The notes under the pieces: generated by a model
The model's input: only the letters and a program-made list of their open reading frames with translations
What the model was told of the DNA's origin: nothing
Database searches by the model: none
Translations under genes and position numbers: made by a program
Shown: in pieces, positions 9,236 through 64,000 of the stretch
Layout of the letters: each line of letters opens with the position of its first letter
Numbering within the stretch: position 1 is the first letter of the stretch
DNA from: Eukaryota sp. TZLM1-RC
Taxonomy: Eukaryota; Protista; Metamonada: BaSk clade
DNA: 64,000 nt
Direction of reading: 5' to 3'
Assembly (NCBI GenBank): GCA_040285825.1
Contig: JAUPSS010000004.1
Coordinates: forward strand, 3,204,550 to 3,268,549

Positions 9236-9242
9236 ACAAAAA

Positions 9243-13898: not shown

Positions 13899-13912
13899 TA
13901 TGTATGTAATTA

Positions 13913-19180: not shown

Positions 19181-19615
19181 ATGCCTGGAAAAAAGTCTGT
19201 CAAGTCTACCAAATCCATCAAGGGAGTTCCATCCAAAGCCCCATCAAAGGCCCCCGCCAAAGCTGTAAGCAAGGCTGTTGCTGAAGGAGGTGCTGTCGCT
19301 GCTGCCCCCAAGCGTAAGAAGGCCCGTAAGGAGACATGGGCTACTTATATTTACCGTGTCCTTCGTCAAGTCCATCCCGATACTGGTATCTCCACTAAGG
19401 CCATGGGAATCATGAACTCTTTTGTCAATGACATTTTTGAACGTATCGCCACTGAAGCTTCCCGTCTTGCTCGTGTTAACAAGAGAAATACTCTTTCTTC
19501 TCGTGAGATTCAGACTGCTGTTAGATTATTGCTACCTGGTGAACTCTCCAAGCATGCTGTTTCTGAAGGAACCAAGGCTGTTACCAAGTTTACCTCTGCT
19601 GGTGAAGGTGAATAG
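19181..19615 (+). CDS. H2B: Histone H2B
   Basis: [16 protein letters not shown]...[30 protein letters not shown]. Confidence 0.98.
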
Positions 19616-19998
19616 ATTTGTGGTATTTGATAGTGTTTTTCAACACTGGATAAATTTGTTTTTTATTGTGTTTTAATTTAAAATGTTTATTGATGTTTTC
19701 ATCAGGATTGAAGGTTTGGGGGAAACGCAAATGGCAATTGTTTAACCAAATTGGGATTTGCTAAACCTGTTGGTCCTAAACAGAACCCAAATTGAATATT
19801 TCAATAGTTCCATATAGGAGAACAGCTAGGTGCACATCTAATGAAGAACGACAACAAAGCCAATAGTCTAGACAACCAAACCACCAAAAACTAACCATCC
19901 AACAATAGCAAATGATAATTGATTCTCGCAAGACATTTTCCCTGCTCTGAATTTCTGCTCAATTACAATGCAGAATGACATAATCCTGATCTACACTA

Positions 19999-20406
19999 AT
20001 GGCCCGTACTAAGCAAACCTCTCGCAAGACTACCTCCACCAAGACTCCTAGAAAGCATTTGGCTACCAAGGCTGCTCGCAAAGCTGCCCCTGCTACTGGT
20101 GGTATCAAGAAACCCCATCGTTATCGCCCTGGTACGGTTGCTCTCCGTGAAATCAGAAAGTACCAAAAGTCTACTGAGCTCTTGATCCGCAAGCTTCCCT
20201 TCCAACGTTTGGTCAGAGAAATTGCTCAAGAATTTAAGGGTGAGTTGAGATTCCAAGCCTCTGGCATCTCTGCACTTCAAGAAGCTGCCGAAGCTTACCT
20301 TGTTGGTTTGTTTGAAGACACCAATCTCTGTGCTATCCACGCTAAACGTGTTACCATTATGCCCAAGGATATGGCCTTGGCTAAGAGAATTCGTTCTGAT
20401 TTTTAA
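19999..20406 (+). CDS. H3: Histone H3
   Basis: MARTKQT...[17 protein letters not shown]...[11 protein letters not shown]. Confidence 0.98.
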
Positions 20407-20779
20407 TTGTGCTTTATAGTTGTGGTGTTCTTCAATACTCAACTTTTGAATAAATTTAGATTTCAATTTTGTTTCGTTTAAAATATCATTACACAAAATA
20501 AATGGCAAAAAAAGACAGCTACTATGCTTGTTAATTTTGTCGGTTTATCAACTACAGCAGCATTGCATACACTGCTGAATCATCAATATGCGTTTCTGGC
20601 CTTTCAGCACCAACATTGTCCTAATTACACAGACCATGACATCAACCAAGTTGAAGAACCCTGAAACCCAACATTCACCATTGACAAACAAGAATTAATC
20701 CTGGCAAGACAATTTGTAAAATCAAACTCAAATTCCCAAACTCCTTTCAAATCTTGTATTCTTATCTTCATCGATCTCA

Positions 20780-21091
20780 ATGGCTGGCCGTGGAAAAGGT
20801 GGAAAAGGTTTAGGTAAAGGTGGTGCCAAGCGCCATAGAAAGGTTCTTCGTGAAAACATCCAAGGTATTACTAAGCCTGCTATTCGTCGTCTTGCTCGCC
20901 GTGGTGGTGTCAAGCGTATCTCTGCACTTATCTATGATGAAACCCGTACTGTTCTCCGTACTTTCCTCGAAAACGTGATCCGTGACTCTGTTACTTATTG
21001 TGAACATGCCAGAAGGAAGACTGTTACTGCCATGGATGTTGTCTATGCTTTGAAACGTCATGGACGTGTTTTGTATGGTTTTGGTGTTTAG
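20780..21091 (+). CDS. H4: Histone H4
   Basis: [22 protein letters not shown]...[13 protein letters not shown]. Confidence 0.98.
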
Positions 21092-21465
21092 GTTTTCTTT
21101 TTTAAGTGTTTGTTAACACAATAAACTTGCTTTTTTTCTCTAATGTTATATACAAATATCTATAGAGAAGAGTCAATGATCGTTCATTCATGATCGTAAA
21201 TTACCAAGCAGTGAAGGAGACCTCACAATGCGACTCAAAGAATGCCGAAGCTGTGGTAATGGGAATAGCAGTAGTTTTGAGCGGGTATTTACAAACTTAA
21301 TCACTATCAAAAATTCTGTTGCCTGCACAGTTCTTACTGCTACTGATCCATATCATTAATAATCTCTGGGCCCTGCTGATAGTAGCACATGCTTTCTGTT
21401 GATTATCCCACTACAAATGAATCTCATATGTCCGAATTTGAACAATCGGATGCACCATCATCTGT

Positions 21466-28812: not shown

Positions 28813-30595
28813 CTCTGGGCTCCTGAGGCAGCTCGCTACTACCATTCCTCTCAACAAACCTTTTCTTTGTTGAACATTCGACAGAAATCGGAAATTGTCG
28901 AATGTTTCTCAAGGACTTCGAAAAACTTCTTTACTCTTTAATTTTGTTGTACTGGGCTCTAGGCTGTATTGAGGTCAAAAATGAATCTGTTCGAATTTGG
29001 GATAGTGTTGAAGGTTCCTGTTGCAGCCTTTTTTGATAATCTATGCCGTCCATAGAACGATCCCTAGAGTTTTGAGAGGGAGGTAAGCGATAACGGTGAG
29101 ATTGTGGGAAATGGTCAGGACAGAAGGCACCTTGACCAGACCACCAAGATGGTGTAATCGATGAGGACCTAAACATTGTGCTGAAGTAAAACAAAGACAG
29201 TGGTTAAATTGAAAATATTGAGACGAATGTTGAGAATAAGGTAAGTGAGAAGGGTGAGAGCCAAAAGCGGGACGCGTTCTGGAAAAATGGGAGTATCCTG
29301 TGTAGGGACTTGAGTCACTGGGATAATTCGTTGAAGCTTTAGGGAGATTTTGGCAATATGATTTTAGAACAAAAGTTCGTAATTCAATTTAATTCAATTT
29401 AAATTGAAGTGTCCGTCAACAAGAAAACGGAAAACTCAATGATCATAATAAACAAAGGTTATTTCAGCATCTCTGAAAAATACGCTTCGTTATGTGGGTT
29501 GAATTCCTTTGAAATCAGTGGTGGGTTCACCGATGCCTGTGAATTGAATCACAATATTGATTTCTTATCTAAATTCCCATCAATGTTTGCTGCCAGGAGT
29601 TAACAGTTTATCGAATTTCTTGGGTAAAGGGTTTGTTCAAATAAAAAACATAAAATAAAAAAAATAAAATCTTCATCTTGCTGTTGTGAAATTACAGAAG
29701 TCTGTTCTTATTGGTTTTGAAGACCTGGATTTTTCTAAACGACTTAGTGTGACTAAGATTAATAATCCCATCTTTGCTGCCTTTTTATCAGACATCCAGA
29801 ACTGTACTAGTTTAATATCTCAGCAAACAAGGCCATTTGGTCTTCACTTAACAAATGAAGCATGTAAACAAAACATGCGGTTGAGATTGGGGCTGTATCC
29901 AAGTGGTCTTTTGGATAATTCTGGTTGTATTTGTAACGAACAACCTACTGCCAATTTCCGTCATATTGTTAGTTGTAAGAAATTTCTTCAATATTGGTCT
30001 GTTCTTCATAATGCCGTTCGTGATGTGACATATGAGATGTTCAAGTGTTACAATTTTAGTTGCAAAGTAGAACCTTTGTTGAAGCATTATAGTGATAATA
30101 ATGTGTTTAATTCACGTCGAGGTGATTTAATTGCTCCTTTTGTGGATTCCTCTCAAGTTGTTGTTGATTTCACTACAGTTGATCCCTTTGCTTTTGTTTA
30201 TCGTGATGATGTTTTACTTAGTACTAATGATCATTTAAACAAGGCAGAAGATCGTAAGAGAGATAAATATACTGAGATATTAAATGATTTAAATAAGAAT
30301 CTTTACTCGAAGTTTTCGTTTGTTCCTTTTGCCTTTTCGATTTTTGGCAACATTGGACAATCCGCCTTGAATTTCATCAATGATTTTGGTAAGTTATGTC
30401 GTTCAAGTGGTAAGAATTTTGCAGGGAATTTATGGAAGAATCGTATCATTTTCGCTTTGTACAGAAGTGTTCCCAAGTACTTGAGTTTAATGATGTCCAA
30501 ACTTTATAAGGATTCATCAAGAGTTGGCGTGGAGAATTTAGTTTCTTATGTGTTTTAGTTTGTTTTGTTTTTATTTGATTCTTCGTAGAAAATAG
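28813..30595 (+). repeat. ~1.8-kb direct duplication, copy 2
   Basis: Matches 16492-18280 at an offset of 12321 bp. Confidence 0.95.
29670..30595 (+). mobile_element. 5'-truncated RLE non-LTR retroelement, family A
   Basis: 290-aa frame with zinc motif and RLE; same 5' junction as the 17349 copy. Confidence 0.9.
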
Positions 30596-30892
30596 TTGTT
30601 AAAATATATTATTTCTTTAAAAATAACTATATAATAACTGCTGATCCAATAAGTGTGTTTTCCCATCCTTTTATCCGACATAAGTCGGATTTAAGTAGGC
30701 CGACCGCATATAAATCGGCGACCTGCCGGCTGTTAGGTCAAAGATTTTCTGACAGGTCGTTTTTCTGACACTGATTCGTGTAACTTATCGTTGTTTTTGA
30801 GGAACGAGTAATGGAAATTTCCCATCCTCCTCATCCAATCTCAGCCTACATCCATTTATTGGATTGCATTGTTTTAGACTTTATCTGTAAGA

Positions 30893-34727: not shown

Positions 34728-34881
34728 TGATGGTCTTGGCTGTTGTGAGTTAGAATTCATACAGTGTAGAGTAACAGAAGTGTAATTTATTACGAAGAGG
34801 AATTGTATTCTCTCTTCTTAAGCTAACAGGCGGAATACTAATAACTAAACTATTAACTATAAATACTATTCAAGACTAACA
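34728..34881 (-). repeat. 3' LTR (154 bp)
   Basis: Identical to 41971-42124 by eye; preceded on the element strand by polypurine tract AAAGAGAGGAAAAGG (~34885-34899). Confidence 0.95.
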
Positions 34882-37800
34882 CTGCCTTTTCCTCTCTTTC
34901 GAGCGACGAGCCCTGGAAGCTCTAGTCACAGGAGGTGAACTAATGGAAATATGACGCTTCTTGGGAGGAGCGGATTTAGTACGGCGACGTGCTTTTGAAG
35001 TCTTGATAAAGTCTTTATACGCGGCAGTATTTTGGACTGTAGACACATGCTCAGTGGTGATCTCTTTTCCTGGCCATTGCACTTGGCAAAAGTCACCTTC
35101 CTGACTGAGCACTTTTTCAATGATGTGTTCTTCGACATCACCTGCAGCGACCCAGGAGTGGAACTCATCGTTGGTGGGCAAGCTGGAGTGCCAGGGAGCT
35201 AAGTGTTTGACGCTAGCTTGGACAATCGTACCTGTGCAGAGATTCTTAATATTCACAGACGAATTGGATACGATTTCAGTAATTAGGAAGGGTCCTAAAT
35301 AGTCTCCATGAAGCTTAGCGGAAGAGCCAGATGCTCTCAATACCAATTGACCAACTTCAAAAGGGTTTGGAGTTGACGATCTAGCTAGCTTGGAAGCTTT
35401 GGAAGCTTGATGGTGTGCTGCCTTTTCCTGTTTCTCTTTCAATCTTCGAAATTTAGATTGAATTTCTTGAATAAAAGATGACTCAGACGTCGAGCTTTCA
35501 ATGATTTCAAGAATTTTGCCAGGGTCTGATCTGGGAGACACATCTGAGCCAAAGATCACTTGGTATGGGGTGTGGTTGGTTATTGAGCTCTTGGAAGAGT
35601 TGATCAATAATTGCACATAAGGCAAGTATTCAGACCACACATCGTAGGCATTGAAGTCTACGAGCAATTTCCGTAGGTTTTGCAGGATGTCTCTGTGTCG
35701 GCGCTCTACCAGGCCGTTGGACGGAGAAAACCTAGGTATTGACTTTGACACCTCTATGCCCAAAAATTTGCTTAATTCGTCAAAGACAGCCTTGGAAAAT
35801 TCGGGTCCATTATCGCTGTGGATTTGAAATGGAATACCAAAGATGGCACAGACTTTCCAAATTAATGCATCTGCAGTAAGATTGGCATTTATCTCTTTTT
35901 AAAGGCACGATGATCGTGAACCTAGAGAAGCTGTCAATAAATACGAGGATGTATTTGTAGCCTTCTTGATCTTCTGGAAGAGGACCAATGACGTCGGCAT
36001 TGACGCGAGCAAAAGGTCTGTCAGCCCACAATGAACCGGTTGGGGGAACATGCAGTTTGGGAACTGGCTTTGTTTTCTGACAGGAGGGGCATTCTTGGAC
36101 GTGCTTATTCATGTCGGTGAGCATGTTTGGCCACCAATAATCGCTGTTCCTGAGCTTGTTCAGGCTTTCAGCTTTGCTTGGATGACCTCCTTGCAGAAGT
36201 CCATGCAACAAGTTAAGGGTGTCCTTAATGAGTGATTTGGGAATCACTATCTTGTTGTCGTGAGTCATATATAAATCAAGATGATTGTTATGAACACAGT
36301 TGTTGAAAGAGGGGTCTTTGGAAGCTATGGCAAGCTTCTGTTCGGACCTAATCCTACAGAGCCATGGCTCGAAAATAGGCAGGTCGTTGGAACATCGTTC
36401 TCTGATGACCATGATACGTTCGAAGTTGTTTAAGTCTTCGATGTAGTATCTTTCATTTTCTGTTCCATCAATTTTATCAATGTAAAATATGGGATGAAAA
36501 TTTGGAGGCATTTGATGGGACAAATGATTGATCTCTTGATGGTCTATAGGCGGAACTATTCGAGACAACATATCAGCCCAGAAGTTATCTTCCCCTTTGG
36601 TATGTACCAAATCAAAGCAGAATTCAGAGAATATGGGTAACCATCTTGTTACAATTCTGTTCTTCTCAGGAGCCGTGAACATGTAGGTAAGGTTTTGATG
36701 GTCTGTGAATATAACCAGTTTCCTTCCTTTCAAGTAGTTTTCAAAACCACTTTGAGTTAACATGAGTAGGATAGCATAGAGTTCCTTTTGGTTTGTCGGC
36801 CAGTTCTTTTGCGAGTTGGTTAACAACCGGCTGAAGAAGCTGATAGGCCTACATTTCCTGTTGATCAGGGGGGTACCGGGGTCGTCGACTTGTTCGATTT
36901 GTTCCCATATGACGCCGCCTACAGCTATGTCGGACGCATCGCAACTAATTAAAATTTGGTTTTCCAGCGGAGGTAAGCTGAGCGGCATGTGCTTCGCTAT
37001 CAGTTGTTTGATCTTTTGAAGGAGTCCGTCGTGCATGTCGGTCCATTGAAGGCGTTGCGCGCGGGGTTTGGGTTTAACTTTGGAGTTATTTCCATCCTTC
37101 TTAGTCAATCTGATGATAGGAGCGATGAGCTCAGATACCTGAGGAAGCCATTCTCTAATGAAGTTGACTGATCCTACGAGGCTGCGGACGTCTTTGATTG
37201 TCTTTGGTCTAGGTAGATTCAACAAAGATTCAACGCGAGTGGGATCGATAGTCCGTTGTTTGTTTTGGGAAACACTGCCCAGTATCTTGATTGGGTGTCT
37301 GGAAGACACGAAATGGCACTTTGGAAGTCCCAAGGAAACTCTTTTGCATCTGGCTTGATCAAGGACGCGACGGAGGCGTTCAATGAATTCGTCAAAGGTT
37401 GAACCTATGATTATGATGTCATCTATGTAAATGAAGACACCGTCTCCCGAGAAGATGTCAGCCATGACGTTTTGGAAAACGGCTGGGACATTCTTTAGGC
37501 CAAAAGCTGCACGTTTGAACATGATGCTTTTGCCAGGAATGCTCAGGGCTGTTTTCTGCCAATCCTTTTCGGCAATCTTGAGTTGCCAAAAGGCTTTGGG
37601 GAGGTCAAGGGTGCCTATGTAGTTCGCTTGGGAGAGAAATACCAGCACATCGGAGATCCTTGGAAGGTTGGGCTCAACAGGAATGGTGTTGGCGTTGACT
37701 CCGTCCTTGCCACTATAGTCACCGGTAAGGCGGGGCTTACGGTGATCTGGGTAGACCACTAGACAGACAGGGGAGCTGAACTCATGGTTCGATGGGACAG

Positions 37801-40800
37801 CAAATCCTGAGTCTACGAGTTCGTCGAAAATTTGGTTAGCGACCTCTAGCCTGGCTGGATTCAGGGTCCTGGGGGTCTTCTAACTCTGACGTCTTCATTG
37901 TAGAAGTTGATTTCCATGGGAGGGCAATCAATACCTTCAGCGTGAGGCTTGAGGGTAAATACGTCTTCGAACTCTTTCAAAGTTTGAAGTAGGGACTTCT
38001 TGAAATGGTCGTTGTCGAGGTTGATGGTACAACCAGATGAGTTGATGTGTTCCAACCAACGTGTGGAAACGTTGACGACTTCTGAAGCTTGCGATATTCG
38101 ATGGTCGAATTCGGCTTCAGGTAATAGTAATGTGCGACAGGCGTCGTCCATTCTAATATAAATGCCCTTGTTGTTCATCAGTCCAAGGTGACTCAGCAAG
38201 TCAGCACCAATGAGAATGGTCTCATGTCCAGGAACGATGCTGAACTTGTGTTTCACATGTACAATCTGGGTAACACAGCCTAGTCTAATACTAAGGGTTC
38301 CAGAAGCGGTACCAAGGGACTGTGAGGTAGTTCCATCAGCAATCTTGTAGGATATGGTTTCGTTGGAACGTGCCATGTTACAATTACTGATGACGTCTAC
38401 CGTGACTACTGAGCATGTTGCGCCAGAGTCGATTATGCCTTTAACCTCGACATTGTTGATCGAGAAGTTTAATTGAAGGCAGTTGGTTGTGGACTTTATG
38501 GATTGTACCATGAATATTGTATCCGAATCATATTCAGCTTGTTCTGAGAAGAAATTAGCTTGAATGTTGTGTGTCTTGGTATGTTCCAAGTTGGCCAAAG
38601 GATTGATTAGGGAATCTTTCCATGTTGTGTTTTCTGTGTGGGAATGTGTTGTAGTTGTAGGGGGTATGGTTTCAAAACTGCGTAAATAGTGACGGAAACG
38701 TTTATTATATGATGAAGAGCCTCTGCCTCTGCCGCGAGTGCCTCTTCGACTACGGAAACCAGAACCTCTAGAACTTCTGCCTTGAGCTTTGTGTTGAGCT
38801 TGTTGCTCTCTCCACTTTTTGCTTCTTTGGCAGTCCTCACTAGGGCACCTTTCAGTCGGATGACCCATTTGTTTACAGAAATTGCATTGGACGTTGGCAT
38901 CAGACTGAGTGGAAGACGGTTGAGTAGAGCTTCCTTCTCGTCGTTGTTGTTTTGGGCGCCTGCCAGAGCTGGAACCTCTTGGTTTGGGGATAGCAGGGGG
39001 AGAAGGTACCGTCTGTCTGCGACGGTTCTCAGTCTGAAACGAGATTCTATTTTGATACAAGAAGTCTACGTGGTTGATCTGCTCCTTAAAAGATCTAGCA
39101 TTACAGAAATTTTCGTATTCTATTTGGAGAACACTGAAAAATTCTCCTAGGGTGTGGCCATCTGAGTAATAATGGGAGGGATTGGACCAGATCCTGAGGA
39201 GTCTGTCCCTGATGATGGTAATACCGATGCTTTCAATAACGTGAGAAGCAATTTCCCATTCGGGGAGTCGGTCGACGGGGTTTCCGTGGATGGTGATGTT
39301 TCTCATTTGATGAGTCAGACCACGAACGTCTTGGATAGCGGTGGAACGCGTTAAGACTCTGCCTATGTTAAGCATGAAGTCTATCCATCTGTTACCATAA
39401 TCTCTCTCAGACCAATCCATGTGTACAGCATGAAGTGCGTCCAGGGCTTGATCCAGTCTACTGAATTGGGTTCTCCTTAGGATCTGTTCCCAAATTTTGC
39501 GTTCGTCTCTGCTGGTTGGGACCATGGCGGAGGAAATTGAAAGGCCAGTGCCTTGATACCTTAAAGCGTTGAGAGCTTCAGGTGTAACGCATTCAGCTAA
39601 GCCTCTAGGACTAATGCGCATGGCAGATCTGAAGAGATCCCATTCATGAATTGGTTCACTGTCGAACCGTTGATCAGATGCCAGTTCTGCTGATCTAGCT
39701 AGTTCAAGTTCTTCGCGAAGTCTAGCAACTTCGCTGGCTAAAGCAACTTGGGCAGGATCCTCGATGTTGCCTCTAGCCTCGTCTACAATTCTGTCCGTAC
39801 GACTCCAGAGGATAAACTTGTTAACAAACTTGAGGAGTTTATCAACGTCTCTCAGATCAGTCGCGTCGAGAGTTGGACGTTTAGGGCGGTCTCTGCGTCT
39901 GTTGTCTCTATCTCTTGATCCCACCATGGAAGATAGGAGGAGGTTACTATCGTAAGTACCTGAGAAAGTAGAACGTGAAGAACTAACCGTAGAAGGTGTT
40001 GGTTGAGCCGTGTGTTGTGAACTTGTTGAACCAGTGGAAGGAGGTGTGGGTGGAACCACTGATTGTTCCATAGGCTGTGCAGGTGCTGGAGTTTGTTCCA
40101 TTGGTGCTGGCACAGTTGGAATTGAGTCTGGAGTTGGGGACTCATCACTGACTTCTACTACAACATCCTCTTCAGTTTGTTCCATGGGAGGATTATGCGA
40201 GGGTTCTGTAGAAGTTTCCATAGGTTGATCTGTGGAAGGTGGAACTTCGCGTTGGTGAGGTTCAGGAGAAGGTTCTATCTCTTCAATCTGGGCTGGAACC
40301 TGGTAAGAAGAGATCGCTGGTTGAACCAAGCGTGTTTTCCCTATACGACCTTCTACCATTACCCACTTTAACATCCTGGATTCTATGCATCCAGGGAAAA
40401 CGGTGACGAGCTGGAGGGCTCTTTGAAGATTGCCAGATCTTCTGTGGTCGGGACCACAATATGACGCTATATGATCAGGACGTCTATCATATAGAAAGAG
40501 TCTTTCACCATATGTGGTCTCGGTAAACCACCACCCTGTTCTATAATCTCTGTCGATAAGGATATCGAGAGATGCGTTGTACCCAGGGCTGAACCTAGGG
40601 TATGGGCAAGGGTTGTAAACATTTAAGAAGAGGTTGTCTTCATCTCCAGCGAAGCGTCTGAATACTCCTTCTCGAGTAGTTCTCATGAACTTAACTCCGG
40701 GTCTTGGTTCGTGAGTTGGTTCTGGGTCATTCCTGGAGGTTTCTGGGGTGATCCTTTCATCGGTAAGAAATGGACCTATTCTGGGAGAGATCCATAATCC

Positions 40801-42003
40801 TAAGTCGTTCTCGACTTTGGGACCGTAGAAAGGAGGCCGTTTGTTGCTCATCTCCTTGGGAGGGATGGCTTCTGGATCCTCTGGAATGACTCGTGTGTCC
40901 CTATATCTAGCGTAAGGGTTGTGCTGACGGGAAGCACCATGATGAACACTTGAGCTAAGGTGGGAGCTAGTTTGAGAAGGGGTAAGTCGAGCAGGTGTAG
41001 AGGATGTTCCTCTTCTAGCTTCAATCTCTCTGTCCAATCTTTTTCTGTGTTCCCAGTTTCGTTCTTCTTGGAGAAAACGCTCTATATATTCTTTAGAGAC
41101 CTCACCAGGAATTTTGTCAATTTCAAAAGAAGGTGCCGTGGGAGGGACCTGATGTTGAGGTAGAGGGGAGAATTCCTTGGGAGGTTCCTCGTACTCAACC
41201 AAATCTGAAAAGATTTGTTCGTACCTTTTCCTTTGCTCTTCGGAAAGAAACGAAGGAAGGTTCGAAAGGCTAGGAATGGAATCACTAGCCTGGTGAGGGG
41301 AAACAGACAGATTATTAACTCCACTAACTGTTGAAGTTAGAGGAGATCCTGAAGTTGAGACAGCAGGATTTTGGATAGTTCTCCTAACAGTTGGAACTGC
41401 AGGGAGAAGCTGTTGAGAGTGAGAGGGTGGAACCTCAGAACTGGATGGAAGGGATGAAGATGGTACTTCAATGGCCTTCTTAGAGGAGGAAGAGGGTTGG
41501 TCTTCCAATCCTTCTTTTGCAGTGAGAGAAGGTTGAACAGTCTCTCTGCTCTGAGCAGAAGGTGAAGATGGTACTTCAGAACTTCTTCCAGGGAGGGGAG
41601 AAGGTGGGACTTCAGATGCTCCCAATTGCGAAGGGGGAAGAGGAGCAACGGAATCCTCTACGTCCTCGTCGTCGTAGGAGACCAACGAAGGACTTATTCC
41701 TTCCGAAGGAACGGAATCCTTGTGAGGGTTGTCTCCTTCCACAGGAACAGAATCCTGAGGAGGGGAGCTTCCTTCCATGGGAACGGAATCCTCTGGAAGG
41801 GAATTGTCTTCCATTGGGGTGGAACCCTCAGAAAGAGTTGCTTCAGGAAGCGCAGAAGCTTCAACCGAAGGAGGAGGCACGGAAGCAGGGTCTGTGGTTA
41901 GTGGTGAGGAAGAGGGACCAGTCTCTTCCTCAAGGATCCTACGTTGAGCCGGGGACGACCCAATACGTATTGATGGTCTTGGCTGTTGTGAGTTAGAATT
42001 CAT
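34876..42003 (-). CDS. Gag-Pol polyprotein, split by two 1-bp homopolymer frameshifts (G5 37871-37875; T5 35896-35900)
   Basis: CNFCKQMGHPTERC knuckle; IIDSGAT protease; LDLPKAFWQ/YIDD RT; CDASD/ELYA/TDH/ADMLSR RNase H; H...GH...CPSCQ zinc finger, DSFSRF/SDNGPEF/NGLVER integrase; GDYLGPF; IEKVL...VQWPG chromo-like tail. Confidence 0.93.
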
Positions 42004-42124
42004 ACAGTGTAGAGTAACAGAAGTGTAATTTATTACGAAGAGGAATTGTATTCTCTCTTCTTAAGCTAACAGGCGGAATACTAATAACTAAACTATTAAC
42101 TATAAATACTATTCAAGACTAACA
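41971..42124 (-). repeat. 5' LTR (154 bp)
   Basis: Identical to 34728-34881; contains AATAAA and the first ATG of the gag frame (42003). Confidence 0.95.
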
Positions 42125-44037: not shown

Positions 44038-44456
44038 GTTATTTGTTTATCTTATTTGAAAAATTATTGTTGTCTATTGGGATACTTATAACTTCCCTCA
44101 ATTAGTTCAATCTGTCTTTTGAACTCAGTTACCACATTTAGATTTCAACGACAACACTTTTAGCCTCCACCGTCGACAGTTGAGGCATAATAAATGACAT
44201 GTGTCGGCAATATGTCGGCAGGAATAATGGCACACTGACCTAGATTCCTTTCCGTCAAAGAAAAAGAAGTTTGATTATCAAAACCAATTTGTTTGCTGAA
44301 AGCAGCACCGCATCAGCTTATTTTAATAATTTAGGAACAAACAATAATTGACCTGATTTTTGATTTACATTTGGTTATTTTAGACAACAATGAGTGAGAC
44401 CAATTTGAAAGTAAGTTTATAAACCAAAAGTGTTGAAAAACACCATGCAAAACAAC

Positions 44457-44840
44457 CTAGATTTCTTGAGAAGCTTGTTCTTCGGCTTCAACACGAGCCT
44501 TGGATCCCTTGGGAAGGAGATCGGAATGAATATGAGGAAGAACACCACCAGAGGGAATCATGATGTGGGACAAGAGCTTGCTGAGTTCTTCATCATTACG
44601 GATAGCCAAGAGAATGTGTCTGGGGACAATACGGGTCTTCTTGTTATCTCTAGCAGCGTTACCAGACAATTCAAGGACCTCGGCGGTGAGGTATTCGAGT
44701 ACAGCAGCCATATAAACAGGAGCGCCAGCTGCAATACGTTCAGCATAGCGACCTTCACGGAGGTAACGACGGATACGACCTACAGGGAATTGGAGTCCTG
44801 CTTTGAAGGAGAGAGTACGAGCACCAGTTTCTTCAGCCAT
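44457..44840 (-). CDS. H2A: Histone H2A (SQEI), cluster 2
   Basis: Protein identical to 18648-19031. Confidence 0.97.
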
Positions 44841-44989
44841 GAGAGATGAATTAATGAGGATGAGGAAATAGAATTTCAATTTCAACACGACAATTTTGAT
44901 TGTTGCAAGATTGTCATTTGTGGCAAAACATTGAATCAGCTTGTTTGTCTTGCAAACACTGAATCTCAATCACCATTTCTCTCAATCTC

Positions 44990-45424
44990 ATGCCTGGAAA
45001 AAAGTCTGTAAAGTCTACCAAATCCATCAAGGGAGTTCCCTCCAAAGCCCCATCAAAGGCCCCTGCCAAAGCTGTAAGCAAAGCTGTTGCTGAAGGAGGT
45101 GTGGTCGCTGCTGCCCCCAAGCGTAAGAAGGCCCGTAAGGAGACATGGGCTACTTACATCTACCGTGTTCTTCGTCAAGTCCATCCCGATACTGGTATCT
45201 CCACCAAGGCCATGGGAATCATGAACTCTTTTGTCAATGACATTTTTGAACGTATCGCCACTGAAGCTTCCCGTCTTGCTCGTGTTAACAAGAGAAATAC
45301 TCTTTCTTCTCGTGAGATTCAGACTGCTGTTAGATTATTGCTACCTGGTGAACTCTCCAAGCATGCTGTTTCTGAAGGTACCAAGGCTGTGACCAAGTTT
45401 ACCTCTGCTGGTGAAGCTGAATAG
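44990..45424 (+). CDS. H2B: Histone H2B, cluster 2
   Basis: Two substitutions versus cluster 1 (GGAV/GGVV, GEGE/GEAE). Confidence 0.98.
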
Positions 45425-45808
45425 ATTTGTGGTATTTGGTGGTGTTTTTCAACACTGGATAAATTTGTTTTTTATTGTGTTCTAATTTAAAATGTTTTAT
45501 TGATGATTTCATCAGGATTGAAGTCTTTTGGGGATATGCAAATGACAATTGTTCAACCAAATTGGGATTTGCTAAACCTGTTGTTCCTAAACAGAACCCA
45601 CATTGAATATTTCAATAGTTCCATATAGAAGAACAGCTAGGTGCACATCTAATGAAGAACGACAACAAAGCCAATAGTCTACACAACCAAACCCCTAAAA
45701 ACTAACCATCCAACAAAAGCAAATGACAATTGATTCTCGTAATACATTTTCCCTGCTCTGAATTTCTGCTTAATACAATGCAGAATGACATAATCCTGAT
45801 CTACACTA

Positions 45809-46216
45809 ATGGCCCGCACTAAGCAAACCTCTCGCAAGACTACCTCCACCAAGACTCCAAGAAAGCATTTGGCTACCAAGGCTGCTCGAAAAGCTGCCCC
45901 TGCTACTGGTGGTATCAAGAAACCCCATCGTTATCGCCCTGGTACCGTTGCTCTCCGTGAAATTAGAAAATACCAAAAGTCTACTGAGCTCTTGATCCGC
46001 AAGCTTCCCTTCCAACGTTTGGTCAGAGAAATTGCTCAAGAATTTAAGGGTGAGTTGAGATTCCAAGCCTCTGGCATCTCTGCACTTCAAGAAGCTGCCG
46101 AAGCTTACCTTGTTGGTTTGTTTGAAGACACCAATCTCTGTGCTATCCATGCTAAACGTGTTACCATTATGCCTAAGGATATGGCCTTGGCTAAGAGAAT
46201 TCGTTCTGATTTTTAA
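45809..46216 (+). CDS. H3: Histone H3, cluster 2
   Basis: Protein identical to 19999-20406. Confidence 0.98.
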
Positions 46217-46589
46217 TTGTGCTTTGTAGTTGTGGTGTTCTTCAATACTCAACTTTTGAATAAATTTAGATTTTAATTTTGTTTCGTTTAAAATATCATT
46301 ACACAAAATAAATGGCAAAAAAAGACAGCTACTATGCTTGTTAATTTTGTCGGTTTATCAACTACAGCAGCGTTACATATACTGCTGAATCAGCAATATG
46401 CGTTTCTGGCCTTTCAGCACCAACATTGTCCTAATTACCCAGACCATTACATCAACCAAGTTGAATAACCCTGAAACCCAACAATCACCATTAACAAACA
46501 ACAATTAATCTTGGCAAGACAATTTCCAAAATCAAACGCAAATTCCCAAACTCCTTTCAAATCTTGCATTCTTATCTTCATCGATCTCA

Positions 46590-46901
46590 ATGGCTGGCCG
46601 TGGAAAAGGTGGAAAAGGTTTAGGTAAAGGTGGTGCCAAGCGCCATAGAAAGGTTCTTCGTGAAAACATCCAAGGTATTACTAAGCCTGCTATTCGTCGT
46701 CTTGCTCGCCGTGGTGGTGTCAAGCGTATCTCTGCACTTATCTATGATGAAACCCGTACTGTTCTCCGTACTTTCCTCGAAAACGTGATCCGGGACTCTG
46801 TTACTTATTGTGAACATGCCAGAAGGAAGACTGTTACTGCCATGGATGTTGTCTATGCTTTGAAACGTCATGGACGTGTTTTGTATGGTTTTGGTGTTTA
46901 G
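46590..46901 (+). CDS. H4: Histone H4, cluster 2
   Basis: Protein identical to 20780-21091. Confidence 0.98.
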
Positions 46902-47303
46902 GTTTTTGTTTTAGGGGTGTTTTTCAACACTTATAAATCCTTTTTTTTTCTCTTTTTTTTATATTTTTTCCTTGTTTCATAAAGAATTTGTTCTGTTAGG
47001 CTTCATCACTGAACACTGGTTGGAAGGAATTTGTTCCTCTAGTTGAGTTTGAAGATAGAAAGAAACTGCCAAAGTAAACACTACTTGTATTTACTTACAT
47101 ATTAATACAAAAGCGCACAAGCTAAACAAAATGACTAGATTGGATGAACATCACTGTCGTCCAATAAAAACGAATTTACCAAATCAAAACAATACTAAAA
47201 TTAAAAGAATAGTGATTTAAAAGATGGTAAATCCTTAATCAAATGATGGTAATGACCAATAAACCGACTTAAATTGAGACAGGGGAAAGGAACAACCCAA
47301 ATA

Positions 47304-48426: not shown

Positions 48427-50170
48427 TTGAGTTCATCAAGTGATGTAAAGCAAGGAGATCCGTTAGGACCTCTTTTGTTTTGTTTGGCCATTCATTTTAT
48501 TTTATTACAAATTCAAGAGATGTTTCCTTCGCTGAAAATGATTGCATATATGGATGATGTTGTTCTAATAGGTGATTTAAATATTGTGAAAAAAGCAACT
48601 GTATGTTTTAAAGAATTATTTACCAAAAATGGCCTCCGACTGAATTTACCTAAATTAGTTTTGTTATCGAATTCTGCAATTTCTACAATAGTTGATGGTA
48701 TTGAAATTCAAGCCAAATTATATTCAATTGATACTATTCGTCATATGGGTTCGTTCTTAGGAAATAATGATGAAATCACCAAAAAATTGTTTGAAAAGTT
48801 GAACTCAATTTCCCATAAAATCGACCGAATGATGACTTTAGATATACAAAAACATATCAAATTTACCATTATAAGACTGTGTTTTAGTTCCAACTTCAAT
48901 CATATATTTCGATCTACAAATTCTCTTATCACTAGGCCTTTGGCTCAGAAGTTTAATGAGTTACGTGCAAAAGTTTTGTCACAATTTTGGGATGTAAAAT
49001 GTTCCAAATTCCAGACCATGCTTATCTTAGTCCACTTAGGATTATGGTGGTTTATGTTGGACAAAGGCTTCTGTTCTTACTTCATGTGCATTTATTGGTG
49101 GATGCATTAAATGAAGAAATTTCAAAGATTGATGTAGAAAAATGGAGTCGATGCTTTCTCCAATCATTCAATGGCAATATTCCAGAAAAGAATCTTTTAA
49201 ATTTAAAATACACTCTCCGAACATTACAGAAACGATTGACTGGAATGGCGGAAAATGATCTTTATAATAATATATGCAGCTCGTCTGTTTAAAATCAAGA
49301 TCTTCACTCATTGTTATTGTAAAAGGGTGTTTGTGAAAATAGGTCATCAGATTTTTCACTTTTTGTAACCATTGTACCACGAAAATTTGGATTGTGTGCC
49401 ACTAATGAAGGATTTGTAACAAAAATGAAATTATATTTGAATATCCCCATTAATCAATTATTATCCAAAGAAAAATATATTTGTTCGAATTCACCTCAAC
49501 TCACTTTGCGCCATTCTCTGCATTATTCTAAATTGATAACTTATCGTTCTTCATTAAATGATGCTGTTAGAGACACTGTTTTCAATATGGCACAAACTGC
49601 AAGAATATCGTCTATCAAAGAGCCTCTGCTGAAGGAAACACTTTCTCTGAATAATTTTGGCTCTGATGATAGAGATGATGTTTACTGTGATTGGATTGAA
49701 AACTCTGAAGCTATTGTTGACTTTGTCTCATGTAATGTTGCAAATGATACTTTGGTTCGCAGAAGAAAACTTAATCCTGTGACTGCTCTTGATTTTAAAG
49801 CAAAAGTAAAACATAGAAAATATGATAAAGATATTGAAGAAGGTAATGCTGGTAGAAATACACAGCTAGTTTTTATTGCTTTCCCATTTTCGATAAACGG
49901 AAGATTATCAGATGAAGCAGAAACTTTTTTGAATGACTTCCAAAAATGGTGCAAGAAAATACAATGAAAAGATTTGATATTTTTTTATGGCGTTCACGTT
50001 TTCAATTTGCCATTATTAATAGATTACCTCGGTTTTTCAATCGAATAAGAGAAGCTTCAGCTAGACAGCAAGCAGATCAAGATTTTGTAGAGGAAATCTT
50101 GGTTCAATGATATTCGTCCCATTAGTTATGAATTAATTTAATTAAGTGTGCATGTTCAATCAATAAATAT
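48427..50170 (+). mobile_element. Longest RLE non-LTR copy (family E): C-terminal RT, zinc motif, RLE and 3' UTR; decayed
   Basis: VKQGDPLGPLLFCLAIH and AYMDD RT motifs (CRE-like), then NDAVRD, KEPLL, DDVYCDW, KVKHRKY, FPFSINGRL; several frameshifts. Confidence 0.9.
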
Positions 50171-56536: not shown

Positions 56537-58600
56537 CTAATAAACCATGACATGTAGTAACTGGAGTCTTTTCTCTTCTGGTTTTAGGAATATTTGAGGA
56601 TCCTTTTCAACAGCGTCTGCAAGAAAATGTATATCCACTGGAAATATGTTATCAACTAAATTCTCGTCAGTGACCAAATTCTCAATTTGACAAGTAAATG
56701 GCTCAATAAGACCTTCAAATATGTCTCTAAGTTCATTATTTCTTATATCATGCTGTTCACATAAATCGAAAAATTCATCATTCAGAAGGTCTGAAATTTG
56801 TTCCGGATGATGAAACAAAGAACAATCTCTATCTTCAACTAAACACAAGTTTTTGAACTGACGAAGGCTAAATCTATATAGTGAAATTATAGTAGACAAT
56901 GGCGTTGAGTATCCACCCAGCTTGTGCATTTCTGCTAACACATTTTCCACATCTGCTTTGTCAAAAAAGACATTAATAAATCGATTAATATGTTTTTCAT
57001 AATTTAATTTCAAATTATTCACAAAATTGGCAAACATAACTGGGGCCATATACTCAGGTGGTCTACTAAATCCATCGGTTGAAAAACGTGGAAAAAACTC
57101 AGGCCTATATCTCAAATGATCTGCATAACTTATAGTTTTGTTCAGCTTTTGTTGTTCAAAGGTAGTCGATAATCTATAATCTCTTTCGAGATAAACAAAG
57201 TTTTCAAAATCCTGTAAAAATGCACCTTTTGGTTTCACCATTTTTTGTCCGTAATACTCAGCTAAAAATAACGAATTCTGGCCATTAATGATTCATATAA
57301 TTGGGCAGATATTTGTGGTGGTAAAAAATTACGTTCAAAACAAGACTGTAAATACAGCTTTAGCAACGAGTGGTGTATATACTCAACTGTTGAAATTTTG
57401 AAGCAGTTTCTCTCAATTTGAGTATCACATTTGAATGTTTAACCATTGAGTTGACGGTTGCTCGAATGGTTTTATAAGATGATAAAATAAAATTGTCTTT
57501 CTGAAACAGCACGAAAAGTTTCAGACAAAGAAAGCAATCATGAAGCCTTCATTGAATCGAATTTTGTCTCAGAGGAGAAGTAGCTAAACAACCAATTGGC
57601 AAAATATGGGAAAATTGCTGATGAAGTTTCATTTTCTTTTCATTTATCATTTTATATGCTAGATTGCCTATTCCATGTCCGTAGGGTATTTTGATAAATT
57701 TTTTGGCAAATACCAAAGTATCTAAAAGAAAAAAGCCATTTTCCCTGATGACAACTTCTCTCCATCTCGGTGAAAGTTGATTGAGTACATCAAGTGTTGA
57801 ATCATTTCGAACAGTGGGAAATGGTAAATCAAGATAACTTAATCTATTTTTAAAACCTGTAAATCACACTGCATTAAATTGTAATTAAGAAAACAATGGG
57901 GTTGATGATTATCAACAAGGTTTAGGAACCTACGAAGCAAGGTTTTTTCGTCAAAGAATATTCCCGCCTGAACATCCATATCAATGTCTGGTAATCTAAT
58001 TTGAGAACTCTTTCTCAATATAAGTGAATATTTACTCTCCAAAAAGAAATTATGGCGATCAAACTTACCAATAACAATCGAAATTCAGAACACTTTTTGA
58101 TCTGAAATCCACTCACCCATTTGCTCATCAGTTTTCTTTTTCAAAAAATTTGCACCCTCTTTTCTCTTTTTGTTGATAATCTCATCAGGTGTGAGAAATT
58201 GGCCATCATGATTTTGGTAAAGATAACCATCCTGATAGGTTTCAAGAACAAAGCACACAACAGTGGGAAGATTTTGATTTGGGGTCATTGATTTGAATTG
58301 AATAAATGGATCAGACTTGAAGCCACTAATACATGGCTCATTTTTTTTGACCAAACTCGGTTTCAAATGTTTCTTTGTCAAAATCTTCCTGTTCTCGATA
58401 TTCAACATTACATTCTAAATACAAATTTCTCGGTTCAGTGCTTTTTGTTGTTTTTTTCGCTTACGCTTTGATGTTTGTTGGTCAAAAATCGCCTTTCTAA
58501 TAATTATTGATGAAGGAGTTGATTTAAAATTGGATCTTCTCTTTCTGGGACCAGAATTTGCTTCAACATCTTCATCCATTGTTAAATCATCAGTAAATGG
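56537..58600 (-). pseudogene. Decayed gene: family-B polymerase-type 3'-5' exonuclease domain plus unknown C-terminal region
   Basis: Across frameshifts: VVCFVLET (ExoI-like), FDEKTLLRRF...NYNLMQCDLQVL (ExoII-like), LDTLVFAKK, HDCFLCLKLF (ExoIII-like); no SLYPS or YGDTDS downstream. Confidence 0.6.
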
Positions 58601-59572: not shown

Positions 59573-60715
59573 AATTTTTTTGGTACCCTTCAACTGCGTT
59601 TCTCTGGTTTTGTTGGCATCAGGGTCACTTTTCATTTCTTCTTTTAATCTTCTTTCCTTTTTCGGTGGTTATCCAGCTCATCTGTGTTTTTTGAGTCATT
59701 ATTTTTACTTTGAAATGTTAAAAGCAGTTCATAATTATTGGTTTTTAATAAAAATTGAAATCTATTTTTCAAACTTTTTCTGTTGGTATTAAGTTTTTGA
59801 TAAGAACATTGTTTGACTATTCGTTTTAAGTTCATTTTTGATGAACTTTGTTTTGGAAGATGATCCTTCAATAAGTGGAAATTTTTTAAAGAGTGGAAAA
59901 CTTGTGAAGGTACCTCAAGAAATTTAGAACTTTTATGAGAAGCTAAAGGTATTTATCTAAATTTATTCCAGCAATGCATCTGAAAAAAAGAGTGAGTAAG
60001 TATTCAGAAATTTTAAGATTAAAGAGAAAAAGCTCACCAATTGTCTTTGATGAAAAGGTGATTCTATCATTTAAAGCTAGGAAAACAGCAGTGGCAGGGA
60101 ATCTTTGAAACAGATTCAAGATAAATTTACAAGCATTTAATAAAAAGAATCTTTCTCTTGAATTATTTAGATGGTAATTGATGTAGTGTTCGAGAATAGA
60201 ATGAATAACTACTTCTTTGGGTTGCTCACCATCTGTTATTGCATTAGCTTCTAGATGTGCTAAGGGTTCAGCTGCTATAAGAGAGAGAAGATAATTGGCA
60301 AAGACATTCGTTTTATTCAGAGCTCTACAATGAGCACGAATGGAATTTTTTGTTCAGGATTTACAGTTTTTAGGTAAGCTCGATGCCAATTGACGAGTTC
60401 GACCAGCAAATAAAGGAGAAGGTCCTTTTCTATTAATCAACTTGCATCTCTGTAACTGCAGCCAATCATTGAAGAAAATATTGAATGAATTTCTATAGGG
60501 AATTAGAAAATTTTCCCATGTAGAAACAAGAGATCCGTCTTGTGGGTATTTAGGAAGAGATCCAAAAAATATGTAGCAATTTGCGTTGTTCTTTGGAGGT
60601 AGAAGGCTTTGGGAAAAAACCCATTTTCGACTTCTGCTTGTATGTTCGGAAAGGTTTTTAACCCTCAACTTGGTTTTGTGAGGTCTTTATTATTCCCTCA
60701 CTTTTCCCTCACTTG
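59573..60715 (-). pseudogene. Decayed, truncated inverted paralog of the Fanzor-like gene plus its upstream sequence
   Basis: Colinear similarity to 62024-62120 and ~62390-63430 (e.g. LLKTNNYELLLTFQSKNNDSKNTDELD vs LLKTNGNELL/LTFEGKNNDSENTDELD); stops and indels; ends before RuvC-I. Confidence 0.85.
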
Positions 60716-61598
60716 ATAAAACAGGTTCTGGTTATGTCGCAACGGAACCTTGAATATATGTCTTTGCGCAACGCAACAAAAGTTTCTCTCTCAATACTTT
60801 CTCTTACTTTGCTCTCTTGTGTGGTTTATATGGATTGTCTTTTTCTCATTCAATCTTATTTCCCTCACTTACCTTCTTTTCCAAGCCTTAAGACCTTCCA
60901 AGAATGGCATTGTTATTGGGTTAGTTGTATTATTATTTTAGAAGAATTAACTGTATATTAAATAAATTCCTTAATAATAATTTAAATAAATTAATTAGAT
61001 TAATGGATTATTTCCTATTGTTTAAATGGATTCAATGAATGAGCAAAGACAACTTTGTTAGCTTTCACAATGATTGTTAGCTTTGACAATGATAAAATCA
61101 AATTGTTATGATCCAGTTCATCTTTAATTGTTGTTATAATTGCACAATGCTACCACTGTCGATGACGACAACTGAAGGTAGCAAGAGTTTAAATATCAAT
61201 AAATAAATTATTTAAAATCAATATCTCAAATGTCTGTAAAGACCGTAATCAACAATGTTTTCTCCTAAAACAAGAGCCAACCCTACATGCAAAATAGTTT
61301 CAACCGTAAACAAAAATTAGGTTCTAAATGGGATCTCCAGACAGTTGCAAAAATGACATTTCTTTTATCTTTGCTTTGTAGGTACAATCAAGCGAGACAA
61401 AGGGATAAGTTTTCCCAAAAGGTAGGTTGCTTTTAAGAATCAATACAAACTAAAAAATTCGCTTGTTTTCATCGCAAATTATTTCTGAGCAAATCGACTA
61501 AATAATGAAATTGGATCATGAAGGAACATAAAAAACATTATGCAAAAGTGTAATTGTAAAAGAAGTGTTACTGGCTTTTTTCCTTGTTTTTTCCATAT

Positions 61599-61907
61599 TT
61601 ATTTATTTATCAAATATGGTTGTGATATGTGCGCATCATGAGAGTGTAGAGACGACAGAGCAAGGGAAAGAGAGGACTGTAGTTGAGATTCAATTGAGGT
61701 AAGTTCTGCATTGATATCATGGCGAAGGTCATTGAGATCAGAACGAAGCGAGAACGCATTTGAAACCTTCTGGAGTGTGTCTGGAGCGAAAAATACATCA
61801 CTTACTTGTGGAAGAGGAAGATTATGTGATTTGCAGTAGTTTTGATAAGTAGTGATTGTGTGTTTAAGCTGAATCACCTTGGTTTGTAAAGAATTGAGTT
61901 TAGACAT
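61599..61907 (-). CDS. Hypothetical coiled-coil protein or gene fragment
   Basis: 102-aa ATG ORF with heptad-like pattern, divergent from the Fanzor-like gene. Confidence 0.35.
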   Translation of the reverse strand: MSKLNSLQTKVIQLKHTITTYQNYCKSHNLPLPQVSDVFFAPDTLQKVSNAFSLRSDLNDLRHDINAELTSIESQLQSSLSLALSSLHSHDAHISQPYLINK

Positions 61908-62162
61908 CGGCTAATAACACAAAACGTCAAACAGTGGTAACCTGTTGAGATTAATGGAGGACGTGGATAAAATGAACTGAGATGCTGAACTACTCAGTTG
62001 GAGAATTCTTACAAAGTAAATGGAAAGTGTGGGAAAGTGTGGGAATAGTGAAAACCTCCCAAAACCAAGTTGAGGGTTAAAAACCTCCCAGAACAGGCAA
62101 CCAGAAGTCGAAAATGGGTGACAAGTGTAAAATTTGATAGATGAGCTCTTTATTCTCACTAC

Positions 62163-64000
62163 ATGTCAGACACCCCCTCTGTATCACGTGTATTCACTCG
62201 GTCTTGTGCACTCAACTCGCTGCTGACCCCTGCAGCGGTGCAACAAATTCGGACTGACCTTCCTGTGGTCACCGAGATTTGTCATGAAGCGTCTTTATTA
62301 CTTCAATCTTTTCTTCTAAATTTTCCGTTGGCATCAAGAGGTTTAGTGGAACAGGATGTATGGTATCTGTTTATGACCGTCATCACCACTGGTTCTTTTC
62401 CAAAGCCTTCCACATCTAAAGGCCAACGCCAATTACTCCATATCTTTTACAATGGATTTCTTCCTGAATGCCCACAAGACAGGTCTCTTGTTTCTGTGTG
62501 GGAAAATTCTTTAGTGCCTTACAGAAATTCATTCCATCTTTTCCTCAATGATTGGCTGCAGTCCCAGAACTGTAATTTTATCAATAGAAAAGGGCTTTCT
62601 TCTTATCTTGCCTGTCGTGCTCGTCAATTGGCCTCCAACGTTAAGACATGTTTACCCAAAATTTGTCAATCCTGGACAAAAAACTTTATTCGTGCTCATT
62701 GTAGAGCCCTGAATAAAACAAATGTCTTTGCAAATAATATTCTTTCACTTTTGCCAGATGAACTACTAGCCCAACCCGAGGAAGTAGTAGTTGATTCTGT
62801 TCTTGAATACCTCATCAATTTCAATTTGAATAATTCAAGAGAAAGATTTTTTTTATTGAATGCATGTAGGTTTATCTTGAATCTCTTTCAAAAATTTCCT
62901 ACCACTGCCTCCCTACTGTCCTCACATGATAAAATCACTTTTTCATCAAAGGAAATTAGTGAGCTTTTTCTCTTTAATCTTAAAATTTCACAATACTTAC
63001 TCACTTTCTTTTCTCATATGCATTGCTGGAAGAAATTTAGAATAATACCTTTAGCTTCTCATAAAGGTTCTAAATTTATTGAGGTACCTTCACAAATTTT
63101 CCACTCTGTGAAAAAATTTCCAATTATTGAAGGATCATCTTCCAAAACAAAGTTTATCAAAAATACATGTCTGAAACGAGTATTCAAACAATGTCCTTAC
63201 CAAAAATTCAATATCAACAGAAAAAGTTTGAAAAATAGATTTAACAAAATTTTATTGAAAACTAATGGTAATGAACTGCTTTTTGACCTTTGAAGGTAAA
63301 AATAATGACTCAGAAAACACAGATGAGCTGGATGAACCACCGAAAAGAAAAAGAAGATCAAAAAGTGAAATGAAAAGTGACCCTAATGCCAACAAAACCA
63401 GAGAAACACAGTTGAAGGGTACTAAAAAAATGCCCCGTCGAAGACGTAGACATCCAGTCGAAATTTTACCTGAAAGGCCCCTTATCGGCGTTGATCTTGG
63501 CCAATCAAGATTATGTGGTTACTTCTTAAATGATAATCAATGTGGAGTTATCCCTTGTCCAACTGGCAGAAGATACATGACAAAAAAATTCACCCAGTAA
63601 ACACTCTCCCAACCAATATTCCGTTCAAAATTTCAACCAATATTTGAACCATTGGAATTTGGTCAGGAGGAAAGTGTATTTGGAAAGTAATCGCCAGAAA
63701 TGGAAAATAATTAAATTTGATAACCGCAGACGAAAAGAGAGACGGTTCAGAGAGAGTCTCAACAAATTTCAAAGTCTGGCTGGACATCCTGAAAAACTCT
63801 ATCTTGCTGTGGGTTCTGCTAATTTCCCTTCTCATTGCCGAAAAGTCAATCGATATGGATCAGCAAGGGCTTTCAGAAAATGGTTGTGTTATCAAAAGGA
63901 CGTGAAGCACTTGTCAACCAGTGAATTTAATACAAGCAAAATGTCAAGTTGTTGCATGGCCGAGAATATTCAAGCAGGCTCATGGCAGATGCGTATTTGT
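62163..64000 (+). CDS. Fanzor1-like (TnpB-family RuvC) nuclease; two 1-bp homopolymer frameshifts; runs off the window end
   Basis: LIGVDLG (RuvC-I Asp codon 63493), KWKIIKFDNRRRKER bridge helix, LAVGSANF, STSEFNTSKMSSCC (Glu codon 63923 next to zinc finger), ...WQMRIC; basic NLS-like insert. Confidence 0.8.

Follow-up and report, generated by a model that had tools for sequence, protein, structure and literature searches.

A left-truncated, probably protein-dead copy of a many-copy Fanzor1-type transposon with a predicted omegaRNA in the free-living metamonad Skoliomonas

Overview

By sequence and structural modelling, the gene at 62163-64000 in a 64,000-nt stretch of DNA (the window) from Skoliomonas strain TZLM1-RC, a flagellate protist and free-living metamonad, encodes a Fanzor1-type nuclease with a rearranged RuvC domain, of a divergent family. 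The window copy itself is an ordinary broken transposon gene, and it is probably a protein-dead, left-truncated member of a young, many-copy, non-autonomous DNA transposon that encodes Fanzor1 together with a predicted omegaRNA. A preliminary description made from the letters of the window had proposed a divergent Fanzor1 family in a protist, and the identity of the host and the analyses below agree with this. We found no paper linking Fanzor with Skoliomonas, or with any metamonad, in a literature search.

The window lies on a 6.9-Mb contig of assembly GCA_040285825.1 with host genes around it, a eukaryotic location as expected for a Fanzor. Its own contig, recovered by lookup via a neighbouring gene (locus L005), equals the window at 17,464 of 17,464 bases and runs 3.2 kb further; numbering past 64000 extends the window numbering along it. 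The gene had been called unannotated, which holds only in part, as the assembly has a 365-aa spliced gene call over the span that looks like a gene-finder's detour round the breaks.

Reading frames and parts of the window copy

The three consecutive +1-shifted frames are present as previously described, with all of the quoted motifs in the sequence (Table 1). A tblastn search with the unbroken sister protein P0034 (651 aa, locus L003, 97.7% DNA identity over 62031-64000) gave matches at 95-97% identity in three frames, one after the other, to residues 1-374, 373-474 and 474-612. The second CxxC and the RuvC-III Asp, predicted to lie past 64000, are found on the same contig as CTEC and in DRDISAAKN; their absence was named in the preliminary description as a refuting outcome. 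The right end, also predicted just past 64000, is present there, folded and conserved. Two stretches of the linker, PPKRKRR (63337) and RRRRRHP (63436), may be nuclear localisation signals. The window copy keeps 2,363 bp of the element, its right-hand part, and lacks the left end and the approximately 1.4-kb left arm that full copies have; an Illumina contig spans the left junction without difference, though with only 30 nt on the inner side.

Table 1. Coordinates of the Fanzor1-type copy and of related features in the window and its extension.
Feature	Position	Strand	Content
Frame 1	62163-63290	+	376 aa
Frame 2	63265-63597	+	contains PLIGVDLGQ; Asp codon 63493-63495
Frame 3	63593-64000, open to edge	+	AVGSAN Gly codon 63812-63814; SEFNTSK Glu codon 63923-63925; SSCC from 63944
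5' leader remnant	62031-62162	+	sister homology begins at 62031; left junction about 62022-62031
Coding segment 1	62163-63284	+	residues 1-374: first WED strand, helical REC region, WED strands
Frameshift 1	63280-63284	+	T5, against T4 in all sisters
Coding segment 2	63285-63581	+	about residues 375-473: acidic/basic linker, then RuvC-I VDLGQ
Frameshift 2	63582-63588	+	A7, against A4-CC or A3-T-CC in sisters
Coding segment 3	63589-64000	+	about residues 476-612: bridge/REC2 helix, Gly at the usual RuvC-II position, relocated Glu, S-x-C-C half of the zinc site (63944-63955), Cys612 at the edge
Beyond the window (L005)	past 64000	+	end of CxxC; RuvC-III Asp 64028-64030; stop 64118-64120
Predicted omegaRNA scaffold	about 64145-64393	+	ends CACAG, then TA and predicted guide
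Host glycogen debranching enzyme gene	starts 64441	+	same strand as Fanzor; 47 nt after the right end
Solo right end	1121-1361	+	predicted omegaRNA scaffold only; 92% identical
Older decayed copy of the same family	59574-60728	-	80% identity; 274-nt deletion over the start codon

Assignment of the family to Fanzor1

Taken separately, the three pieces gave no Pfam match at E 10, so the earlier call had motifs as its sole basis, and segment 1 alone against Atlas features returned weak helical look-alikes, none of them clear. The pieces were searched one by one, and P0034 was used in place of the joined protein. Pfam PF07282 (Cas12f1-like_TNB), the zinc-ribbon/TNB domain between RuvC-II and RuvC-III, matched P0034 at 27.6 bits against a cut-off of 26.3, and also scored above the cut-off in P0047 and P0054. 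A family profile searched against the PDB found SpuFz1 as its best match (E 1.3e-9, positions 245-595) with D/E/D in register: D444, E587 and D622 of P0034 align with the SpuFz1 triad as a split RuvC, and the corresponding codons of the window copy start at 63493, 63923 and, past the edge, 64028.

We aligned 11 rows spanning three Skoliomonas species and two classical DPG Fanzor1s, leaving P0100 out as a chimeric gene call. D444, G550, T590, S591, C597, C612, C615, R621 and D622 are invariant, and E587 nearly so. The RuvC-II Glu is replaced by the invariant G550, and E587 is followed by six residues and then S594-x-C-C597; the spacing from Gly to Glu is 37, against about 45 reported. In the published Fanzor signature, Gly or Pro stands in place of the RuvC-II Glu, and the Glu is relocated to a point six residues ahead of the zinc motif (PMC10530073; 10.1101/2023.08.09.552727), a pattern that the Gly and relocated Glu fit. 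The first zinc Cys is Ser, while C596, C597, C612 and C615 are present. RuvC-I reads DLG and not the typical Fanzor DPG, a form found only here and in the sister from Skoliomonas GEM-RC1 (58% identity). This is a deviation and not an exclusion from Fanzor, since SpuFz1 itself departs from DPG, which is the dominant yet not universal signature. In a tree of 13 rows, with no Fanzor2 or TnpB row among them, the families nearest to the DLG pair are two RCL families, both DPG.

An AlphaFold model of P0034 (pLDDT 56, low confidence) retrieved Fanzor1 chains (GtFz1, PpFz1 and SpuFz1) at ranks 1-7 in Foldseek (E 1e-6 to 4e-5), with Fanzor2 at rank 16. The best VIA match was GtFz1 (Z 11.8, rmsd 13.9 over 410 aligned), and TM was about 0.25-0.3 with models of pLDDT 56 and 54; a model of the C-terminal half alone did not separate Fanzor1 from Cas12f, Fanzor2 or TnpB. 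Two of the checks put forward in the preliminary description, a profile search and AlphaFold with Foldseek, ranked Fanzor1 first with the P0034 family as the query, and together with the Pfam match they uphold its Fanzor1-like call. Size (651 aa), profile and structure ranking place the family nearer to Fanzor1 than to Fanzor2 or TnpB, as far as sequences and models can tell.

The family is large within Skoliomonas, its copies numbering scores, with 82 annotated members in one cluster. The first piece retrieved 28 proteins, all named ones coming from three Skoliomonas assemblies, mostly TZLM1-RC, a strain that by elimination is taken to be the S. litria of PMC11316075. Against 1.84 billion representatives, P0034 found 32 proteins, comprising Skoliomonas families and two DPG Fanzor1-like proteins (E ~6e-4), and a profile search for remoter relatives returned Skoliomonas proteins only. 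A second natural 651-aa ORF lies at L009:7838-9793 (-), and a full-length ORF is found in GEM-RC1 too. Identity to the GEM-RC1 homolog is 65, 78 and 43% at the first, second and third codon positions, indicating that the lineage has been under long purifying selection. In the L009 ORF, a -1/+1 pair within the basic linker, its members separated by 17 nt, preserves the open frame; the right end of this copy is whole, 50 nt before the start of RRN3.

The whole element and its left arm

The full element measures 3,753 bp, and includes a divergent promoter as well as 1.4 kb of sequence ahead of the ORF. One left end, CWGTGGTTGAATTT, is common to L003, L006 and L011, which lie at three unrelated sites, and is an imperfect inverse of the right end, giving 12-nt inverted ends with a 4-nt insert. 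The 2-bp duplication at the three full-length sites is TA, TA and TT; in L003 a retroelement splits the right end. We found no transposase in any element copy examined, the left arm included. An earlier placing of the left end about 180 nt before the ATG was dropped, since copies share longer arms.

Within the left arm lie the opening 455 nt of a gene for a 756-aa MJ1316-RCC1-BTB protein and a piece from the C-terminal part of a chaperonin, which we read as captured host DNA. The full MJ1316-RCC1-BTB form in L010 stands head-to-head with an older Fanzor relic, at the same spacing. It lies at L010:10001-12271 (+), encodes a 756-aa protein of unusual domain combination, and is known in two 99%-identical copies; because two near-identical full copies exist, we keep the reading that the full gene may be cargo of a larger element. 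An MJ1316 ORF considered as a dedicated partner of the nuclease is probably not one, as it equals the first 455 nt of the 756-aa gene with a shared 1-nt loss.

Two further observations concern element ends. At 60854-60894 (-), 41 nt match the left arm of the L008 copy, and are also found as a loose end in the contigs of another sample; the match implies that a second type of left arm exists. At L011:542-580 (-), the last bases of an 85%-identical subfamily copy and the first bases of its flank are repeated 25 nt downstream.

Right end and predicted omegaRNA

Over the approximately 240-250 nt after the stop codon, TZLM1-RC and GEM-RC1 share 80% identity, a level that third codon positions come nowhere near. 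This region folds well beyond shuffled sequences in both species (z -4.0 and -5.2), with 52 pairs common to the same alignment columns; 12 of the 15 changed pairs remain paired, three of them by double change. With two species and few independent events, the pair conservation lends moderate support to an omegaRNA scaffold. Alignment of the genomic copies, as the preliminary description had suggested, defined the right end: conservation stops sharply at CACAG then TA (64393 in the window copy), and the flanks thereafter all differ. Among nine right ends examined in TZLM1, seven read CACAG-TA, one CACAA-TA and one CACAG-TT, and the GEM-RC1 end also reads CACAG-TA. A conserved block followed by a variable flank is the layout predicted for an omegaRNA scaffold and its guide. 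No Rfam family matched the right end, and the stretch was sought in sequencing runs recorded as RNA and found in none.

In six of the seven tabulated copies, the right end lies 26-123 nt before the start of a same-strand gene. The solo right end at 1121-1361 starts at the point where conservation between species sets in, and 26 nt separate its end from the ATG of an AAA ATPase; it is a candidate protein-less guide locus, whose guide would cover the leader of the AAA ATPase gene. The predicted guide of the window copy, with TA, matches the minus strand of sister Fanzor ORFs at 13 of 14 nt (L005:2835-2848 (-), just outside the window, against L003:6737 (-)), and the window copy has a private change at the matching site. 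The match is probably due to chance, and the preceding motif is not ATTA.

Origin of the two frame breaks

Both breaks are positioned as previously described, and the first is the plain T4-to-T5 gain that had been noted. The second, described as a single extra A, is instead a replacement of A4-CC by A7, with one base inserted and two changed. Comparison with all sister copies showed that both are private to the window copy, the sisters breaking elsewhere at a similar rate. In seven young copies, about 10 small indels stand against 96 private codon changes, and three plainly dead older copies have a similar indel to codon-change ratio of 1:6 to 1:8. Eight histone ORFs in two 96%-identical clusters of the window have no coding indels, a weak control with 36 runs of four or more against 51 in the Fanzor ORF.

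We consider it likely that the breaks reflect real decay. The principal rival, that the gene is intact in the cell and the frameshifts are uncorrected long-read consensus errors in a repeat, would make this an active locus on a left-truncated, immobile element. The assembly was built from Nanopore R9.4 reads at 41x and Illumina-corrected (PMC11316075), and both breaks are +1 and lie in runs of T or A; L009 likewise carries its compensating pair in A runs. The window copy has no in-frame stop, all of its catalytic and zinc residues are kept, and its private changes, 9 silent to 11 replacement, fall below the neutral 1:3.7. Illumina-derived contigs also lack both breaks, yet they differ from the window at up to 14 other places, and so show the family majority and not this locus. 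Also against consensus error are the second break, which takes three base changes rather than a slip in run length, the small-indel rate, close to that of the dead older copies, and the indel-free histone ORFs, weak control as they are. We judge assembly error unlikely, though it deserves some weight. The three frames might alternatively be joined in the cell by programmed frameshifting or tiny introns, much as the gene call of the assembly joins them by splicing; each gap, however, is a single base, and no sister shares either break, all being continuous through both sites or broken elsewhere, which argues so strongly against such joining that we regard it as scarcely credible. With both breaks absent from every sister and from the majority Illumina contigs, and with the left arm and left end gone, the earlier suggestion that the gene is possibly intact finds little support. 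The window copy is most likely dead as a protein gene with a usable predicted RNA.

Left junctions and mode of spread

The left ends are ragged, falling at seven or more different points, and the right ends are sharp. Four of nine copies repeat TA and the opening bases of their right flank no more than 45 nt from the left junction, over 11 bp in L002 and in L009, 8 bp in L006 and 7 bp in L003. Among 72 cross-pairings only one reaches 7 (permutation p about 3e-4, the idea of scars having been formed on three of the same copies later counted). Two held-out L011 copies gave 4 and 5 nt, which is not significant, and one of these is full-length, where none would be expected. A junction duplication was sought at the window copy and not found, the longest match being 2 nt. 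The repeat begins inside TATTA in L002, L003 and L009, and the same motif precedes the left end in L006. The opening letters of the L002 and L003 flanks (CTGTG, CAGTG) resemble those of the left end.

Going by what is known of Fanzor1, the product of an unbroken copy would be a 651-aa nuclease, which would bind an RNA that starts in the 3' non-coding region, crosses CACAG-TA and takes in about 15 nt of flank. The nuclease would target a motif (predicted TATTA or ATTA) whose last two letters are the duplicated dinucleotide, followed by flank sequence, a combination that would exist at the empty site only; cutting there, and repair off the occupied chromatid or allele, would restore the element. 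New sites would be reached via a DDE transposase encoded elsewhere, in keeping with the Tc1/mariner-like ends. The window copy would make no nuclease, but its whole scaffold could load a sister protein in trans. For Fanzors, restorative homing of this kind is a proposal, TnpB and IscB being the systems in which it has been demonstrated (PMC13565253). Tentatively, the left junctions of the truncated sisters may be scars of Fanzor homing, in which the empty site was cut, copying-in from the right end was aborted, and the product was end-joined; such a scar would consist of TATTA and the first 5-9 nt of the guide target in duplicate, as in the 11 bp of L002 and L009, and more weakly in L003 and L006.

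The same junctions could arise if the family spreads by one-ended or retro-copying, with a fixed right end and variable left stops, and Fanzor is a passenger; the 7-11-bp duplications would then be ordinary target duplications, excision footprints or chance. The raggedness of the left ends against the sharp right ends fits this, as do the likeness of the duplications, with a templated insert at L009, to LINE-type junctions, and a genome full of non-LTR elements; cut-and-paste excision footprints could explain the CTGTG and CAGTG starts of the L002 and L003 flanks. Right ends, however, carry no poly(A) tail or shared donor flank, full copies have the divergent promoter, 1.4 kb of upstream sequence and a precise left end with its 2-bp duplication at three sites, and both nuclease and scaffold are under cross-species purifying selection, so that we think this account improbable. 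Still less probable, in our view, is that the family acts as a nuclease-poor RNA-guided DNA binder, or as a promoter donor kept by the host, rather than as a homing cutter. The change of DPG/DPN to DLG, the Ser at the position of the first zinc Cys, and the placing of right ends shortly before same-strand genes would suit such a role, but all full-length members retain the three catalytic acids, the majority of copies decay, the zinc site still has four Cys nearby (596, 597, 612 and 615), and short intergenic spaces may account for much of the right-end placement.

Neighbouring features in the window

The older minus-strand copy of the same family, with two stops and many indels, ends before RuvC-I. 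A head-to-head pairing of the two copies as a two-gene cassette was rejected, as the minus-strand copy is older and is absent from sisters. Between them, at 61599-61907 (-), lies a 102-aa ORF facing away from Fanzor; in one sample, the Illumina contigs part from the window sequence at 61619 and carry different sequence from there on, and the ORF may represent the truncated beginning of a longer gene, an arm that was captured, or a difference in assembly. A decayed piece of a second, distant family, an exonuclease-Fanzor fusion, lies at 56537-58242 (-), and is 86% identical to part of a 1008-aa ORF (L006:2219-5245) with PolB-type exonuclease and weak TNB matches.

Further along the window, we identified the two four-gene core histone clusters at 18606-21141 and 44416-46953, with all eight ORFs open, and a Gypsy-like LTR element at 34876-42003 (-), in which Gag-protease, RT-RNase H and integrase were read from motifs, with identical 154-nt repeats at 34728-34881 and 41971-42124. 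Many repeated fragments resembling 3' parts of non-LTR retroelements occur at 8423-9236, 12490-14552, 16492-18306, 28813-30623 and 48427-50165.

Significance and comparison with known systems

The family extends Fanzor1 to free-living metamonads, and makes natural full-length proteins available (P0034, P0047 and P0051), along with a long predicted omegaRNA that the comparison of species supports and a motif predicted to be AT-rich. It may hold sequence traces of Fanzor-driven homing, a process listed in a review as shown only for the bacterial TnpB and IscB (PMC13565253). If the scar reading is true, the genome itself reveals the motif, the raggedness of the left ends arises as a side effect of homing, and Skoliomonas, being in culture, offers a host in which to test the natural function of Fanzor1.

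Among the closest described systems is SpuFz1 with its element Spu-1 of Spizellomyces punctatus (PDB 8GKH; PMC10432273), which shares a similar protein size, the D, relocated E and D in register, the lack of an internal transposase, inverted ends, a motif ending in TA before the left end, and many partial copies as well as protein-less right-end copies. The predicted scaffold is, however, about 250 nt here against about 75-90 nt in SpuFz1, RuvC-I is DLG against DPN, the predicted motif is TATTA/ATTA against CATA, and the inverted ends are 12 nt and imperfect, with the 4-nt insert, against 30 nt in Spu-1; the Skoliomonas element additionally carries its 1.4-kb left arm of putatively captured host DNA, and is too distant for detection with a single sequence. 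GtFz1 (Guillardia theta, 9CER) and PpFz1 (Parasitella parasitica, 9CF0/9CF1) are the top structural matches and share a large helical REC region, but are only 10-15% identical over the alignments, with the low TM noted above from a low-confidence model. The same order of motifs is found in the metagenomic DPG Fanzor1-like proteins P0095 and P0096 and in the Skoliomonas proteins P0073, P0078, P0089, P0091 and P0093, nearly the only relatives among the 1.84 billion representatives, which differ in keeping DPG or DPN.

Non-autonomous IS630/Tc1/mariner and Pack-type elements have a TA duplication, C(A/T)GTG ends and captured 5' or 3' pieces of host genes. The Skoliomonas element departs from these in one TT duplication and in its short, unequal inverted ends. 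Finally, TnpB of IS200/IS605 and IS607 offers a working model of homing, with a guide from the right flank and a motif from the left flank (PMC13565253), but is bacterial and smaller, mostly has the usual RuvC-II Glu, and is accompanied by a TnpA transposase, with no target duplication.
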